Of a stretch of DNA of 64,000 nucleotides, positions 5,984-59,695 are shown piece after piece. Numbering within the stretch: position 1 is the stretch's first letter; each line of letters starts with the position of its first letter. Under the pieces are notes generated by a model. That model saw only the letters and a program-made list of their open reading frames with translations, searched no databases and was not told the DNA's origin. Where the stretch lies: IMG/VR virus record IMGVR_UViG_3300005613_000002, positions 124,001-188,000 of that record; one strand, written 5' to 3'. A program made the translations under genes and the position numbers.

Positions 5984-6056
5984 TCCGACATAGCGCAGTT
6001 GGTTAGCGTACTCCCGTTAGAGGGAGGGGTCACTGGTTCGAGTCCAGTTGTCGGTA
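5984..6056 (+). tRNA. Atypical tRNA with 6-nt anticodon loop (GTTAGA), identity uncertain
   Basis: Good acceptor, D and T arms; CTCCC/GGGAG stem closes only 6 nt. Confidence 0.6.
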
Positions 6057-6171
6057 CAGGAGGGGTAGTTTATAAGGATTCCTATTGATACGGATGAAAA
6101 CTCAACATGGTGACGTTAGTAGAATGAATGAAACCAGTAGTAAATCTACATACGCTATAAAACTAACAAAT

Positions 6172-8006: not shown

Positions 8007-8366
8007 GGGGCAGCACGGTTTTGACAGCGTGTATGAGTGATAATGTAAGCAAGTAGTAGTTGAATTAATCTACTTTAAAAGGATTCAAAACTATAAATGT
8101 AGAAGACATTATGTCTATCCAAACTTCTGTAACAAGAGGTGAAAGCGTATTTGCAAGAAATACTGAACTTGCAATTGCAGCATAGGAAACAAGAAAACAG
8201 TAGAACCATCTGATGATGTTACGATTTGTGTGATTACGTTAACACCTTAGATGAAAAACTCCACAGCAATCATACTATTTTTGGAAGGTTAGAAAACTTT
8301 ATCCTAAACTTGTAGAAATCTTATTAATCACATGTTTGGACAGGGGTTCGATTCCCCTCTGCTCCA
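8007..8366 (+). ncRNA. ssrA: tmRNA
   Basis: 5' GGGGCAG..TTTGAC and 3' GGGGTTCGATTCCCCTCTGCTCCA tRNA-like domain; tag frame 8099-8185 ending ELAIAA-TAG. Confidence 0.9.
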
Positions 8367-8544
8367 CTAAAATAATTATTATGAGTAATAAAAAAATTAA
8401 TAACATTAAAGAAAGTCTTGAATATCTTAAAAAGAATAAAACAGTTTCAACAAAACAACTATTTGATGATATTGAGACTGAAACAATTTATGATTTAAAA
8501 GCAATGGGATATATTGGTTTTGGTAAAAATAAACATTAAGGTAT

Positions 8545-27232: not shown

Positions 27233-27303
27233 TACTTGTTAGTACAATGGATAGTGCACCCTTTCGAAAGAGGGTTATATTGGTTCGAATCCAATGCAGG
27301 TAC
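27233..27303 (+). tRNA. Degenerate tRNA-Arg(TCG)-like gene
   Basis: Acceptor, D and T arms present; irregular anticodon stem around TTTCGAA. Confidence 0.5.
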
Positions 27304-31480: not shown

Positions 31481-32341
31481 ATGATATCAAACAGAGCAAA
31501 ACGAATAGGTTTAAAAGAATTAGAAATTTTTGATAATTTTTTTATTGATAAAACATTACCTAAATTTAAGATGGAATCCACTAATAATAAGGCAGATATG
31601 GGTGGGGTTTCATGGTCAACACCATCTGAAGGTGGTGTTACTGATAGTGGGAATTGGGAAAATGATTCTGGTGGGTTTTCGTTTAGAAGAAAGTTAATTT
31701 CGTTGTTATCTCCAAAAGATAAAAAACCGAAACAACCGAAAAGAACATTAACTACTCTTGAATTATTTACTGCATTATCAAAATCATATAAAGAATTATC
31801 AAAAATTGGTGAGGTTGCTGAACATTACGAAAAAGCACTTATTCAAGCAAAAACATTAGGTCAAACAGCATTGTTTGATAAATTAAAAGATTTAGTTGAT
31901 GTAGTTAAAGGTGAAGCAATATTAATTGCAATGGGTTTAACCAAATATGTGACTGAAAAACAAATTGTTGATTTTTATGGGTTAGTTGGTGAGGATAAAA
32001 ATTTAAAGTTGACATGGATTAAAAACTTCAATAGAATAATTCCTGAAGATATTTACGAAGTTAAAAAAGATGTTGATGGACGTAAAATATTTGATAATTA
32101 CGTTATTCTTCATTATGACCCAGAAAATAATGGCGAAGAATTAACAAAACAAGAATTAGAAGATAAAAAAGACCCAATATTATTCGGTTTGATTAAAGAT
32201 AGTAAAAAACTTTATTATGTTGCTGATTGGAAAGATGATTATTGTGATTTAACTCTTGAAGAAATGTTTAATGAATTAGGTGAGAAAACATTAAAAATTA
32301 ATAACAGAAACGTAAAAACATTCATTGATAAAATTAAATAA
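31481..32341 (+). CDS. Hypothetical phage protein
   Basis: Long ORF with KDPILFG..YYVADWKDDYCDLT; start uncertain. Confidence 0.55.
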   Translation: MISNRAKRIGLKELEIFDNFFIDKTLPKFKMESTNNKADMGGVSWSTPSEGGVTDSGNWENDSGGFSFRRKLISLLSPKDKKPKQPKRTLTTLELFTALSKSYKELSKIGEVAEHYEKALIQAKTLGQTALFDKLKDLVDVVKGEAILIAMGLTKYVTEKQIVDFYGLVGEDKNLKLTWIKNFNRIIPEDIYEVKKDVDGRKIFDNYVILHYDPENNGEELTKQELEDKKDPILFGLIKDSKKLYYVADWKDDYCDLTLEEMFNELGEKTLKINNRNVKTFIDKIK

Positions 32342-32709
32342 TGAAAGAAAACATTAATAATATTGCAGAAAAAATGTCAAGACTAAACGCTGTTGAACTT
32401 AGTGAGTTATCAAGTGTTTTATTATCTAAATATAATATGAGTGCAACAATTTATCATTTTGGTGTTGTACCAACAATAGAGAATCCTAATAATAATAATA
32501 AATGTGATTTAGTATTATTAGAATGTGGTCAAAGAAAATTAATGATTGTTAAATCAATTAAAGAAATTTTCGGATTAGGTCTTAAAGAAGCAAAAGATAT
32601 TATAGACACAGTACCAACCTATCTTAGTAAATCAATATCAATTGTAAAAGCAGAAAAAATTAAATTAGTGTTAGAGGAAATTGGTGCTAAAGTTGAAATT
32701 AATTATTAA
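32341..32709 (+). CDS. rplL: Ribosomal protein bL12 (L7/L12) homologue
   Basis: LNAVELSELS N-domain; KLMIVKSIKEIFGLGLKEAKDIID..P..AEKIKLVLEEIGAKVEI C-domain. Confidence 0.8.
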   Translation: MKENINNIAEKMSRLNAVELSELSSVLLSKYNMSATIYHFGVVPTIENPNNNNKCDLVLLECGQRKLMIVKSIKEIFGLGLKEAKDIIDTVPTYLSKSISIVKAEKIKLVLEEIGAKVEINY

Positions 32710-35543: not shown

Positions 35544-35616
35544 GCTCCTGTGGCTGAATGGTTAAAGCAATGGACTCTAAATCCATTTTTTGCAGGTTCG
35601 AATCCTGTCAGGAGCG
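35544..35616 (+). tRNA. Amber suppressor tRNA (CTA)
   Basis: ATGGA-CT-CTA-AA-TCCAT arm; GCTCCTG/CAGGAGC acceptor; G73. Confidence 0.88.
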
Positions 35617-36551
35617 CAAAAAATAAATATAATGAATAAAATTATTGCCGAAGAATTACACAAAACTGAACCAGATAAATTTAAAATTTTCAGAGAATGG
35701 GGAAGTGTTAATAATAAAATTAAAGATTTTGAAAATAAAGCAAACCTAAAAACATTTAAATATCTTTTTGGTGAAGATGGGCAAAGATTATGTGAACATT
35801 TTAAATATGATTGTGAAACTAATGTTAATAAATTAAAAACATATTTAAAATATGAACAATATAACGATTTGCTTGTAAACATATATTATAATGATAATTT
35901 GTTTATTATTTAAAACAGATCAATAGATTTCATGATAAATTAGATGAAGTCAGTAGTAGACTTAAAGTAATTATTGATGATGAAACAAAAAAAGATGAAT
36001 GTAATGTTTTATCATTAAAATATTTCTTTTTAACTAATTTAGGGATAAAAATTGATGAATCTGTTGAATTTACTGTAAAACATTATCTTGATATGATAGA
36101 TAATGAGAATCCAATAACATTAATAAATGAACTTAAATAAATAAGATGGAAGTAAGTTATAATTATAATGAATTAGAATTCACTGCATATTATGATGAAG
36201 ATGGATATTTAAAATTTGTTAAAGATAATATCCATAATAAAGCATTAATGATTGAGAGTATTCAGGAAGGTAAAGGGTTTAATATTTCTAAATCTTCTTT
36301 TATGATGGATGGTTTTACTTGTCACGGAATGTATGTTCGAGTTATGGATATTAATTTATTCATACCAAAATTTATTTTCATAAAAAACAAAACTGATTAA
36401 TTATGGGAATGGATGTAGATGCTATTGTTGCAAGACAAGCAATTGAGAAAATTGGGAAAGTTTTATTAAGTGTAGAACATGGTGAACGTGAGGAAATTAC
36501 TGATGAAATTATAGAATTTTCAAAAAAACTTGAAAAAAAGTTTGGAAATAA

Positions 36552-57791: not shown

Positions 57792-58860
57792 AAACGAAAA
57801 ATTTTTTTATAATAAATTATAATAATGGAATACAATAAAATGACATATCTCGATCTTTTAGATGAAAGATTGAAAATTAATAACGCAATTAATGAATATG
57901 ATGAAAGATTAAAACAAGAGGTATATACTGTTAAAGCTAATGGAGAATCAGAACACTATGAATCACCACTAGAAGCAGCTAATATGGCAATAGAAACCAT
58001 TCAAAGAGAATTAAATGATGAAGAAGACCTAATCTCATTATTTGAAATGGGTGTTGAACTAAAAACAACTAAATTTAATCAAGCAGAAATAAAAGAATTT
58101 GTTATTATGTCAAATCCCTAAGTTAATCCCTATTCCTTTTTACTTCTTCATAGTCATAAGCAATTATCGCAAGAAATAATATAATAGTTAAATTTAAACT
58201 TGTATCAACCAAACTATTTCCTAAATTACCAATACCAATAATAATATCATAAATCATATCTATTTTATTTAATTAATTTCCCACAATTAGGACAATATTT
58301 TTCTTTTAAAACCTTATCACAATCATATGACTTTCCACATGTGGTAACATACTCATAATCGTGAAATCCAAACATTCCAAAGTCAGAACGTTTCCATATA
58401 CAATATGTGTTTTCTTTTGTATTCATGTAATGTTTTATATAATCAGTATGCTTACTCATATAACTCAGGGTATTTTGCCTTATCAATAGTTAACCATGAT
58501 TCATATGCTGGATTATCTCCACAATTTTTTAATATCGACCATATAAATCCTAATCCTAATGGTATTCCAATTATATATTCCATACTTCCCATTTTATTTT
58601 TCGCTTCCTAAATCCACCTATACAATAATGTGGTGTTTTTCTAGTAAACTTATCCCTACCACAAAGTAAACATCTATATTTAATTGTTTTCATACTATAA
58701 CTATTTAAAATTAAAAAATAACTTTAATTTAATTATTACTCTAACTATCCACCTATTTTGATTACAATGCTTACAATAAATATAATCATATAATTTAAGA
58801 TCATCACTACAAATTTTACATTTTTCAATATCACCCTCAAGTATAATCATGAATTATATT

Positions 58861-59244
58861 TTAAATCCTTACAATTTCACCACTTGGAGGTTTCGCACTA
58901 ATTCCATTCCTGTTAAACATAACAAAATTAATAACATTACCACTATCTGGTAAAATAATTCCATCATAACCCATATTATCAATCTCACCTAAAGAATATT
59001 TCTCATATTCTTCCCATCCAGCAGGATTATTAATTGTTATATACCTTTTCATTATGTGTTTTGAACCTAAACCACCATGCTCCTGATTCTTTATGCTTTC
59101 AATACTATTAGTAAACCATACCACCCCTTGTGTGGCTCTAGCAAAACTAAAGTTAGAAAACTTTTCATTAGTCCCATGATATACTTCATATGTAGTCTCG
59201 TTTAACAATTCTAATTCTTCTTTTATTATTTTCTTAAAATCCAT
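58861..59244 (-). CDS. ART-PolyVal-like domain protein with KKIIKEE N-terminus
   Basis: VYHGT..F..F..VWFT..GYDGII. Confidence 0.55.
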   Translation of the reverse strand: MDFKKIIKEELELLNETTYEVYHGTNEKFSNFSFARATQGVVWFTNSIESIKNQEHGGLGSKHIMKRYITINNPAGWEEYEKYSLGEIDNMGYDGIILPDSGNVINFVMFNRNGISAKPPSGEIVRI

Positions 59245-59347
59245 ACTTAAATTTTATTATAAATACATGATGAAACATATATGGATGCTATCAATATTAC
59301 TCTCACCGATAGGTGCTCCGAACATGTTTTACTTTCCTTTATCTAAA

Positions 59348-59408
59348 ACATTAAGGCTATCGTACTATTTAAATGAATGGCTGCTTCCAAGCCAACATAC
59401 CTTAATGT
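59348..59408 (-). ncRNA. 23S rRNA uL11-binding domain (H43/H44) mimic
   Basis: Minus strand reads ATGTTGGCTTGGAAGCAGCCATTCATTTAAA, closed by an ACATTAAGG/CCTTAATGT stem. Confidence 0.7.
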
Positions 59409-59416
59409 GAATGATA

Positions 59417-59695
59417 TTAACACCATATTATCTTATTACCTGTTATAAAATAATGTGCATGATATTTAGGTGCTTCACTTTTAGTATTCCCAATTGATGG
59501 TCTTAATGTAATGAGACCATCATTATCAATTAATTTCCAGTTTTCAGGTGATAATGGTGTTACTGTTTCTAACCCACATCCACAAGCACATAAATGTATT
59601 GCAATATGATTTTTCACAATATATAAAATACCCTCAGTAAGGAATTCTTTCTCTGGTATTGAATTACAATATTTAGGTATTAATTTATTTATCAT
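59417..59695 (-). CDS. DUF6527-like protein
   Basis: HLCACGCG..TLRPSIGN..HYFI..IIWC. Confidence 0.65.
   Translation of the reverse strand: MINKLIPKYCNSIPEKEFLTEGILYIVKNHIAIHLCACGCGLETVTPLSPENWKLIDNDGLITLRPSIGNTKSEAPKYHAHYFITGNKIIWC

Follow-up and report, generated by a model that had tools for sequence, protein, structure and literature searches.

A ribosomal RNA hairpin by which ribosomes engage translation factors is not what one expects to meet in a phage genome. The lack of ribosomal RNA is part of the definition of viruses and, to our knowledge, what phages encode for translation comprises tRNAs, tmRNA and some exchangeable ribosomal proteins, and no functional RNAs derived from rRNA. 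The locus described here, which lies in a 64,000-nt stretch of DNA analysed as a whole (the window) from a 321,624-bp (321 kb) phage genome with Bacteroidota-type hosts, raises the question of whether a phage may encode a free-standing copy of the GTPase-associated centre (GAC) of 23S rRNA and, if so, what such a copy would do.

A self-closed fold between two phage genes

The element lies within the 172 nt (59245-59416) that separate two ORFs of the minus strand, which encode a DUF6527 protein upstream and an ART-PolyVal ADP-ribosyltransferase (ART) downstream (Table 1). Read on the minus strand, the arm ACAUUAAGG and a single U are followed by the hairpin AUGUUGGC / UUGGAAGCA / GCCAUUCAU, which is equivalent to helix 43 (H43) of 23S rRNA, by the junction UUAAA, by the 11-nt UAGUACGAUAG at the site of helix 44 (H44) and by the returning arm CCUUAAUGU; together these form a self-closed 61-nt fold (59348-59408). 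The TAA stop codon of the DUF6527 gene lies 8 nt before the closing stem, while 3' of the mimic there follow a spacer, a second imperfect hairpin, an AU-rich stretch and the ATG of the next gene at 59244. The 9-bp closing stem, recognised in the initial annotation as not derived from rRNA, is present in the minimum free energy (MFE) fold (ViennaRNA), and a 65-nt fold (-16.9 kcal/mol, z=-2.5) recovered both this stem and the hairpin; the whole 172-nt gap folds with z=-2.0.

Table 1 Features of the GAC-like element and of its surroundings (window coordinates).
Feature	Position	Strand	Basis or remark
Closing stem, 5' arm ACAUUAAGG	59400..59408	-	Sequence, MFE folds, host consensus; at the H42 position, non-rRNA sequence
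Helix 43 equivalent	59373..59398	-	Rfam LSU local alignment, pattern uniqueness, 23S identity, family profile
H43 5' strand	59391-59398	-	Part of the helix 43 equivalent
H43 loop UUGGAAGCA	59382-59390	-	G at 59388 is the equivalent of position 1067
H43 3' strand	59373-59381	-	Contains the Bacteroidota-type extra U
Junction UUAAA, equivalent of 1082-1086	59368..59372	-	LSU alignment, 23S consensus
Helix 44 remnant UAGUACGAUAG	59357..59367	-	LSU alignment, folds, host consensus
Closing stem, 3' arm CCUUAAUGU	59348..59356	-	Sequence, MFE folds
Second imperfect hairpin	59273..59329	-	Fold z=-1.7; between mimic and ART gene
AU-rich gene-start region of the ART gene, with recurrent motif TATTTATAATAAAAT	59245..59272	-	Motif scan
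ART-PolyVal ADP-ribosyltransferase, 127 aa	58861..59244	-	PF18760; downstream neighbour
DUF6527 protein, 92 aa	59417..59695	-	PF20137, E=1.7e-18; upstream neighbour

The second hairpin, initially placed at 59283-59325, does exist within slightly wider limits, and folds only weakly better than shuffled sequences (14 of 200 shuffles); it has no repeats elsewhere in the genome and is a possible transcript end or processing signal. A sigma-70 promoter scan, which does not cover promoters of the Bacteroidota type, remained at chance level near the element, and a terminator scan near the element also gave a chance-level result, the sole "terminator" being H43 itself. The element is single-copy and lies outside the tRNA arrays, on the strand opposite to them: the nearest tRNA ends at window position 35617 (+), the element being at 59.3 kb on the minus strand.

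The core is identical to Bacteroidota 23S rRNA

The string quoted in the initial annotation for the minus strand of 59368-59398 is located there exactly, and its proposed match to 23S rRNA around E. coli positions 1055-1085, in a Bacteroidetes-like variant, was borne out both by alignment to the LSU model and by comparison with host rRNA. In a permissive Rfam scan of 59150-59500 the sole meaningful match was to positions 1092-1149 of LSU_rRNA_bacteria (the end of H42, H43 and H44), found at 59352-59404 (-), where H43 and the junction align perfectly, H44 has a deletion of 6 nt and the outer arms pair at the position of H42. The local match scores 16.5 bits (E=0.004 for a 351-nt search), which, taken alone, would be borderline for a search of the window as a whole. 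None of the Rfam families attains its gathering score here, the bacterial LSU rRNA (RF02541, 50 bits) included, and the flanks are phage ORFs with no continuing rRNA helices.

Because the scaled E-value is borderline, three further tests of rRNA likeness were carried out: (i) the window contains the 17-mer H43 core a single time, the expectation from 100 shuffles being 0; (ii) a profile built from 72 related phage elements (see below) finds this site alone in the 321,624-bp genome, with E=2.3e-7; and (iii) the block 59368-59398, comprising H43 and the three-way junction, is identical to the Bacteroidota 23S consensus at 31 of 31 nt, for which we calculate a chance of ~1e-13 for this genome. 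The consensus was drawn from at least 120 contigs of species-representative genomes, scanned for the G-containing core; among the matches listed the contigs are overwhelmingly of Bacteroidota, and their 23S rRNA reads CTAGG-ATGTTGGCTTGGAAGCAGCCATTCATTTAAA-GAGTGCGTAACAGCTCACTAGTC almost invariantly. G1067 and the extra U after 1078, odd in comparison with E. coli, are the standard state of Bacteroidota 23S rRNA. The closing stem is compensatory with respect to H42 of the host, two pairs having changed between the host (CUAG/CUAG) and the element (UUAA/UUAA). The element is a free-standing, self-closed copy of H43 and the junction of the GAC, in the variant of the host phylum.

Helix 44 is missing from this copy

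In the host rRNA the junction is followed by GAGUGCGUAACAGCUCA (17 nt, the H44 hairpin) before the return strand of H42. The element has 11 nt at this site, 6 nt too few in comparison with the 17 of the rRNA, and neither the MFE nor the centroid folds contain a hairpin there. The H44-like segment of the initial annotation does follow the junction, as a mere remnant of the helix. Examined for the parts of the GAC fold, the element contains the H43 stem-loop with the conserved 1065-1073 loop, identical to the Bacteroidota consensus, and lacks the H44 hairpin (1087-1102), its GUAAUA-type loop and the C1092-G1099 pair on which the tertiary fold depends; a profile of the H44 block (GCGUAAYAGC) has no match anywhere in the phage genome.

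The C-terminal domain of uL11 reads the tertiary fold of the whole 58-nt domain (PMC1802607). Judged from its sequence, this copy is unlikely to adopt the full uL11-binding tertiary fold and, since H44 is gone and uL11 recognises the fold of the domain as a whole, a high-affinity uL11 site is doubtful here. Intact in this copy are the H43 hairpin, its 1067 loop included, as well as the junction and a closing helix free of defects; with H44 lost, only the H43/1067 hairpin can therefore be presented by this copy.

A large family of GAC-like RNAs in phages

The element has relatives in other phages. Besides an identical locus in a second metagenome contig (L284, see below), free-standing GAC-like RNAs were found in at least 118 IMG/VR contigs, with the H43 core carrying A or G at 1067 as the query, and in several cultured jumbo phages. 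A 23S-like continuation is present in only four of the at least 118 contigs listed, one of which (L105) proved to be a minimal element; the other contigs among the matches listed have the core and the junction in common and then diverge. Among the same matches there are 90 distinct non-rRNA cores, 72 of which follow a common plan: a variable 5' arm of 4-15 nt precedes the block of H43 and junction, which extends through GAGU; 41-441 nt of insert and the conserved YYUUUGGCGUAAYAGCACA, with an H44-type hairpin, come next, and a 3' arm able to pair with the 5' arm ends the element. The inserted arm is placed between 1090 and 1091, just 5' of the H44 hairpin, resulting in a four-way junction.

The closing arms pair over 8.2 bp on average when cognate and over 3.7 bp when non-cognate, pairing of at least 6 bp being found in 83% of the cognate and 12% of the non-cognate arm pairs, and there are 65 distinct closing-arm sequences among 69 elements. 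The four-way junction was returned independently by RNAalifold from 16 shorter members, with a closing stem, an H43 whose upper stem is invariant and whose base covaries, an arm-closing helix that also covaries and an H44-like stem; double compensatory changes occur in 13 of the 21 pairs. Two pairs covary in the family as they do in the real GAC, namely 1058-1080 (A-U 14, G-C 16, U-A 19, C-G 2) and 1082-1086 (U-A 25, C-G 19, A-U 5). The suggestion in the initial annotation that the element had been selected as an autonomous fold is supported by the covarying closing stems of the family, as well as by the compensatory changes relative to H42.

A tRNA lies within 500 nt of 41 of the 72 elements (within 50 nt of 23), and all 41 are on the strand of the tRNA. 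Complete copies are extant in unannotated gaps of the genomes of Cronobacter phage GAP32, Serratia phage BF, Xanthomonas phage XacN1, in which an intrinsic terminator follows directly 3', and Aeromonas phage 4_4572, in which the copy is located upstream of a tRNA-Met; BLAST also matches several Erwinia jumbo phages and the Xanthomonas phages XaC1 and XbC2. Paenibacillus phage Pd_22F was excluded as a family member, its match being genuine 23S rRNA in that record. In Serratia phage BF H43 itself is degenerate, indicating that H43 can decay in some lineages. The copy of GAP32 has an A at 1061, where its enterobacterial host has a U; U1061A is an experimental stabiliser of the GAC tertiary fold (PMC1802607). 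Tracking of the host rRNA variant is found only in the Bacteroidota-type minimal forms and, anecdotally, in GAP32.

Besides the local LSU match described above, searches of the window, 12 IMG/VR loci and three cultured-phage loci against Rfam 15, with gathering as well as permissive thresholds, returned only tRNA, tmRNA and one group I intron. No description of the family was found in the full text of open-access papers and bioRxiv, in Rfam 15 or in the GenBank annotations examined, and a survey of viral ribosomal proteins that covers GAP32 and bL12 reports no rRNA-like RNA (PMC6375957). The family is large and apparently undescribed so far.

Mimicry of the sarcin-ricin loop (SRL) was considered as a further trait of the family and rejected, convincing SRL-like hairpins being present only in contigs L098 and L031. 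UAGUACGAUA is present in this copy and in the insert of GAP32, and AGUACG occurs in 10 of 74 inserts (shuffle mean 3.1, maximum 10).

Minimal forms and the descent of this copy

This copy has the closing stem of its own and the rRNA-type H43/junction core that characterise the family, and lacks the H44-like block, the inserted arm and the location in a tRNA array. It belongs to a minimal, insert-less subgroup together with the elements of contigs L105, L056 (identical to L116) and L114. The G1067 core was found in only 17 viral contigs, all four minimal forms being among those. Unlike this copy, the other three keep the H44 block. L105 carries the same 31-nt block with a full H44, an unrelated closing stem and a second hairpin followed by a strong terminator (fold z=-3.4); L056 has compensatory changes at the base of H43, and L114 has C-G at 1082-1086 in place of U-A. 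These three adjoin protein-coding genes and not a tRNA array, the flanking genes being those of a lysozyme, of a nuclease and a GIY-YIG endonuclease, and of a DnaJ-like protein. Diverged orthologs of the truncated form were also sought, and the one metagenome match, L284, is the same phage.

A1091 is common to this element, L105 and L056, and in the latter two its partner U1100 restores the pair, whereas the host 23S copies have G-C at 1091/1100 in 120 of 120 among the matches listed. Because the A1091 signature differs from the host 23S copies, we take the element to be of phage-borne descent rather than a fresh capture of host rRNA. The closing stems of this element, L105 and L056 are mutually unrelated.

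The truncation might imply that the element is a non-functional relic, a decaying copy of a phage GAC-like RNA or of captured rRNA, in which the stem and H43 persist owing to recency or chance. In line with such a relic, H44 is eroded, the element occurs only once and away from the tRNA arrays, the scans for promoters and terminators do not exceed chance, the second hairpin is barely better than shuffles and H43 is degenerate in Serratia phage BF. Against it stand the perfect 9-bp closing stem, a fold that has been cleanly re-closed after the deletion and a 31-nt core with zero changes, bordered on both sides by sequence in which no resemblance to host rRNA or to L105 can be recognised any longer. 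Since the core is unchanged while the flanks have diverged, and since the changes of the stem with respect to H42 are paired, continued selection on the closing stem, H43 and the junction, accompanied by the loss of H44, is the better account, and we regard a relic as unlikely.

A proposed decoy of the L11-stalk base

Many large phages encode, in a stable-RNA context, a copy of the GAC that is autonomous, under structural constraint and matched to the host. As an rRNA domain cannot replace part of a ribosome, the RNA must act by being bound. We propose that the full-length relatives are stable small RNAs, usually co-transcribed with the phage tRNAs, which would present the surface of the ribosomal L11-stalk base and would act as decoys, or sponges, for a factor that recognises this surface. 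Candidate targets are host uL11, a GAC-directed toxin or modifying enzyme and a factor that docks on the 1067/1095 loops; a translational GTPase or the RelA complex are other loop-reading candidates. Expression, stability, a binding partner and decoy action are what we infer for these RNAs. We know of no anti-phage system that targets the GAC.

A decoy role is favoured as the best available explanation by analogy with two known systems: phage tRNAs evade or rescue host tRNA-targeting defences (PMC10264068, PMC10802454), and the toxin Tre23 inactivates ribosomes by ADP-ribosylating H44 of the GAC (PMC8661411). The GAC is targeted by antibacterial enzymes such as Tre23, and there is therefore something that a decoy could protect. 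This copy would originate from a Bacteroidota-phage sublineage of "minimal" mimics, in which H43, the junction and a re-closed stem were kept and H44 was lost; it may have become a decoy specialised in H43 alone, or may be partly decayed. With moderate confidence, we consider the element to be a truncated member of a widespread, unannotated class of phage RNAs that copy the host GAC and are probably decoys. We put forward more tentatively, as a possible generalisation, that large phages across several bacterial phyla produce stable GAC-copy RNAs, tuned to the host variant and co-expressed with tRNAs, which act in trans as decoys for those host proteins, toxins or defence effectors by which the L11-stalk rRNA is recognised, this copy being an H43-only derivative.

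A narrower version of the proposal, anticipated in the initial annotation, is that the RNA is a uL11 sponge: it would titrate free or exchangeable host uL11, leaving L11-poor ribosomes on which RelA is inactive and the stringent response is blunted. Titration of uL11 is plausible for the full-length relatives and, for want of H44, doubtful here. In isolation, a GAC fragment of 58-60 nt is able to fold and to bind L11 (PMC1802607), which makes uL11 binding the biochemical default for the full-length members; these keep every element of that fragment, the GAP32 copy even with the fold-stabilising U1061A, and none of the family phages checked encodes uL11, so that the host protein is the sole possible partner. 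The copy studied here lacks the H44 hairpin, whereas L11 recognises the tertiary fold. In addition, the loop nucleotides 1067 and 1095 are conserved or host-matched in the family. According to mutational work, L11 binding does not depend on the identity of 1067 and 1095, and the state of these exposed loops therefore hints at, and leaves room for, a loop-reading partner. L11-poor ribosomes also translate more slowly, and slower translation would be a cost to the phage. A sponge specific for uL11 is, in our estimation, rather improbable, and the decoy that we propose is not bound to this single target.

Neighbouring genes are not conserved partners of the element

The location of the mimic between the DUF6527 and ART-PolyVal genes, on their strand, might also suggest a cis-acting leader of the ART gene (serving autoregulation by the ART or by uL11) or an RNA antidote to a GAC-directed ART, the more so as an ART that targets H44 of the GAC exists (Tre23). 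The neighbour is an ART-PolyVal protein (PF18760, 36.1 bits with a cut-off of 31.2) for which 81 homologs were found, the conserved H of the NAD-binding motif, H23 in YHGT, being invariant in 37 homologs. Its AF2 model (pLDDT 82.8) has weak structural matches only, the best one to the anti-CRISPR protein 6KYF followed by PARP/tankyrase domains; the fold bears a weak resemblance to small protein-modifying H-Y-E ARTs and not to Tre23, and this copy does not contain the nucleotides targeted by Tre23 (1095-1098). The ART start codon lies 104 nt downstream of the end of the mimic and is preceded by a generic gene-start motif, TATTTATAATAAAAT, with 66 matches in the genome, 56% of which have an ORF of at least 50 aa within 40 nt, as against 13% of random positions. 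The mimic is absent from six viral ART loci (31-66% identity), from L278, in which the ART is 83% identical, and from the other ART loci read upstream; conversely, none of 120 family loci contains an ART homolog, and the other minimal forms flank unrelated genes. Going by these comparisons of loci, the adjacent ART gene is not a conserved partner of the mimic, and a role as ART-substrate mimic or leader is largely refuted by the comparative data; leader and antidote alike are highly improbable. The uL11-responsive cis element considered in the initial annotation is unlikely as well, with no ribosomal-protein gene downstream of the element, ART homologs without the mimic and 104 nt to the ART start. 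The ART gene lies directly 3' of a tRNA array in L279 and L281; perhaps small ARTs merely tend to be located in the same genomic regions as clusters of stable RNAs.

Synteny through DUF6527 was rejected as well, the mimic being absent from all 28 viral loci with DUF6527 homologs. The phage does encode bL12, as initially annotated, at window ~32341-32706 (+), 27 kb from the element and on the other strand, and its genome has no uL11 gene. A uL11 gene was found in none of six genomes checked and bL12 in two of the six: the genome studied here and the L114 contig have bL12, which GAP32, XacN1 and the complete genome of L056 lack. Linkage to genes of stalk proteins was accordingly rejected as a general property.

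A DNA-level or artefactual origin (an assembly chimera, an attP-like core matching host 23S rRNA, or coding by the 47-aa plus-strand ORF 59267-59410 that spans the element), to which 31 nt of perfect identity to host rRNA and the ORF itself might point, is close to negligible, given that the genome is complete (an IMG/VR record with direct terminal repeats) and contains no LSU rRNA gene, that the rRNA-like stretch is only ~50 nt long and embedded between phage ORFs, that L284 carries an identical locus (100%) with the same neighbours in a second assembly, that homologous elements exist in finished genomes of cultured phages, that there is no integrase nearby and that the ORF, listed mechanically, is antisense between two minus-strand genes. 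Moreover, covariation at the RNA level across the family means that structure, and not DNA identity, has been selected.

Comparison with known systems

The element shares with the bacterial GAC (E. coli 1051-1108, the site of uL11 and thiostrepton) an H43 stem-loop and UUAAA identical to the Bacteroidota version, and in the full-length phage relatives the H44 loop, the 1082-1086 pair and C1072/C1092-G1099 are retained as well. The bacterial GAC is, however, part of a 2.9-kb rRNA, whereas the element is a separate, phage-encoded 61-nt fold with its own stem and without H44, and most of its phage relatives add an arm of 41-441 nt.

Leaders of ribosomal-protein operons mimic rRNA sites (L10_leader, RF00557; the L1 site in the L11 operon), and the L10 leader imitates the region beside the GAC. 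Like the element, these are RNAs outside the ribosome that imitate a protein-binding site of rRNA; they differ in being cellular, located upstream of the ribosomal-protein genes that they regulate and only loosely rRNA-like, while the element is viral, a near-exact copy and followed by no ribosomal-protein gene, its relatives being found in tRNA arrays with terminators. No Rfam leader family was matched by the window, the 12 IMG/VR loci or the three cultured-phage loci.

GOLLD (RF01998) and ROOL (RF03087) are large structured phage RNAs of unknown function that often occur near tRNAs. The likeness is confined to their being structured non-coding phage RNAs that often neighbour tRNAs: neither was matched at gathering or permissive thresholds, and the GAC family is defined by its rRNA-identical core.

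Phage tRNAs and tmRNA occupy the same genomic niche and strand as the canonical family, all being copies of RNAs of host translation in large, tRNA-rich phages, and counter-defence is plausibly a shared logic (PMC10264068, PMC10802454). Phage tRNAs are substitutes in translation, in contrast to an rRNA domain of 60-400 nt, which can only be bound. Tre23, an ART-HYD1 Rhs toxin that acts on nt 1095-1098 of H44 in 23S rRNA (PMC8661411), identifies the GAC as a natural antibacterial target, and an ART gene adjoins the element. The differences are considerable: Tre23 is a T6SS effector of another ART family, the neighbour being an ART-PolyVal protein with a weakly PARP/6KYF-like fold, the element has no 1095-1098 loop, and the linkage of ART and mimic is not conserved.

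Implications for phage-encoded translation genes

If the proposal is true, this would be the first virus-encoded mimic of a functional centre of rRNA. A widespread, constrained and host-matched copy of the GAC would add a new type to the translation-related genes of viruses, and would suggest that the L11 stalk is the site of a conflict so far unrecognised, in which uL11 and the stringent response, or toxins directed at the GAC such as Tre23, may be involved. Direct tests of the family are feasible, complete copies being present in cultured phages with tractable hosts (GAP32, XacN1, BF and 4_4572). When three metatranscriptomes were overlaid on L105, only rRNA-derived short contigs were obtained, over the rRNA-identical core, where reads are like those of host rRNA. 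As reads of the core are indistinguishable from host rRNA, filtering of rRNA is expected to hide these elements, which may explain why they have been overlooked.

Members of the GAC-like family and their inserts
The canonical GAC-like RNA of Cronobacter phage GAP32, located in an unannotated gap of 293 nt, carries U1061A, a substitution that stabilises the tertiary fold of the GAC; the hibernation factor HPF is among the genes of this phage. The variable arm of two other family members (L098 and L031) includes the sarcin-ricin-loop-like hairpins AGUACGAAAGGAA and AGUACGGGAGGAA. A GGUAAGG-containing motif, CACCCCGUAAAUGGUAAGG, is common to approximately 20 of the 74 inserts, where it is placed immediately 5' of the H44 block, and other inserts have in common GCGAAAUG, pairing in register with AUGAUG.

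Resemblance to genuine rRNA
In L105, a record with an insert-less (minimal) mimic, overlaid metatranscriptome and metagenome contigs stack to huge depth on the rRNA-identical core of the mimic (2617-2700), and no such pile-up of these contigs was seen in the region outside this core. GAC-like elements and host rRNA will be mixed up in read-based analyses. The record of Paenibacillus phage Pd_22F (MZ092003) was rejected as a family member, as its match is genuine 23S rRNA sequence near the end of the record (~83.1-84.9 kb), which could be due to host DNA included with the phage sequence or to the packaging of a fragment.

Genes adjoining the mimics
The product of the gene downstream of the window mimic is a small, stand-alone ADP-ribosyltransferase (ART) of the ART-PolyVal type, in which H23 (YHGT) and Y93-D94-G95 are unvarying across 37 homologs. 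Its AF2-predicted fold bears a weak likeness to the anti-CRISPR protein 6KYF and to PARP/tankyrase domains. At two loci with ART homologs (L279 and L281), tRNA arrays directly precede the homolog. In the complete 327-kb phage genome L056, a GIY-YIG homing-endonuclease-like gene directly adjoins a minimal GAC mimic, to which it is convergent.

Coordinates of the features in the window and in the compared records
Feature	Record	Position	Strand	Remark
tRNA, irregular anticodon loop	window	5984-6057	+	
tmRNA	window	8007-8367	+	
tRNA, irregular anticodon loop	window	27233-27303	+	
bL12 gene	window	~32341-32706	+	inside tRNA region; Ribosomal_L12, 69.5 bits
tRNA, CUA anticodon	window	35544-35617	+	amber-suppressor type
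Mini-ORF series	window	58265-58850	-	40-73 aa, zinc-ribbon-like; downstream of ART
ART gene	window	58861-59244	-	
TATTTATAATAAAAT copy	window	59250-59266	-	
DUF6527 gene	window	59417-59695	-	CxCGC motif; upstream of mimic
GIY-YIG gene	L056	3932-4576	+	
GAC-like RNA of GAP32	JN882285	~289502-289760		

Probable gene-start motif and translation genes of the window phage
TATTTATAATAAAAT has 66 matches genome-wide when up to two mismatches are allowed. In 56% of the matches, compared to 13% of random positions, an ORF that starts with ATG and encodes 50 aa or more follows within 40 nt, with the distance between motif and ORF having its mode at 6-7 nt. TATTTATAATAAAAT is likely a generic gene-start signal of this phage, either a promoter or an AU-rich initiation region.

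Approximately 38-39 plus-strand tRNA genes and the tmRNA lie within 2860-35617 of the window. Stop codon usage in the long open frames of the phage genome is 188 TAA, 16 TAG and 13 TGA. bL12 is also encoded on the contig that carries another minimal mimic, L114.
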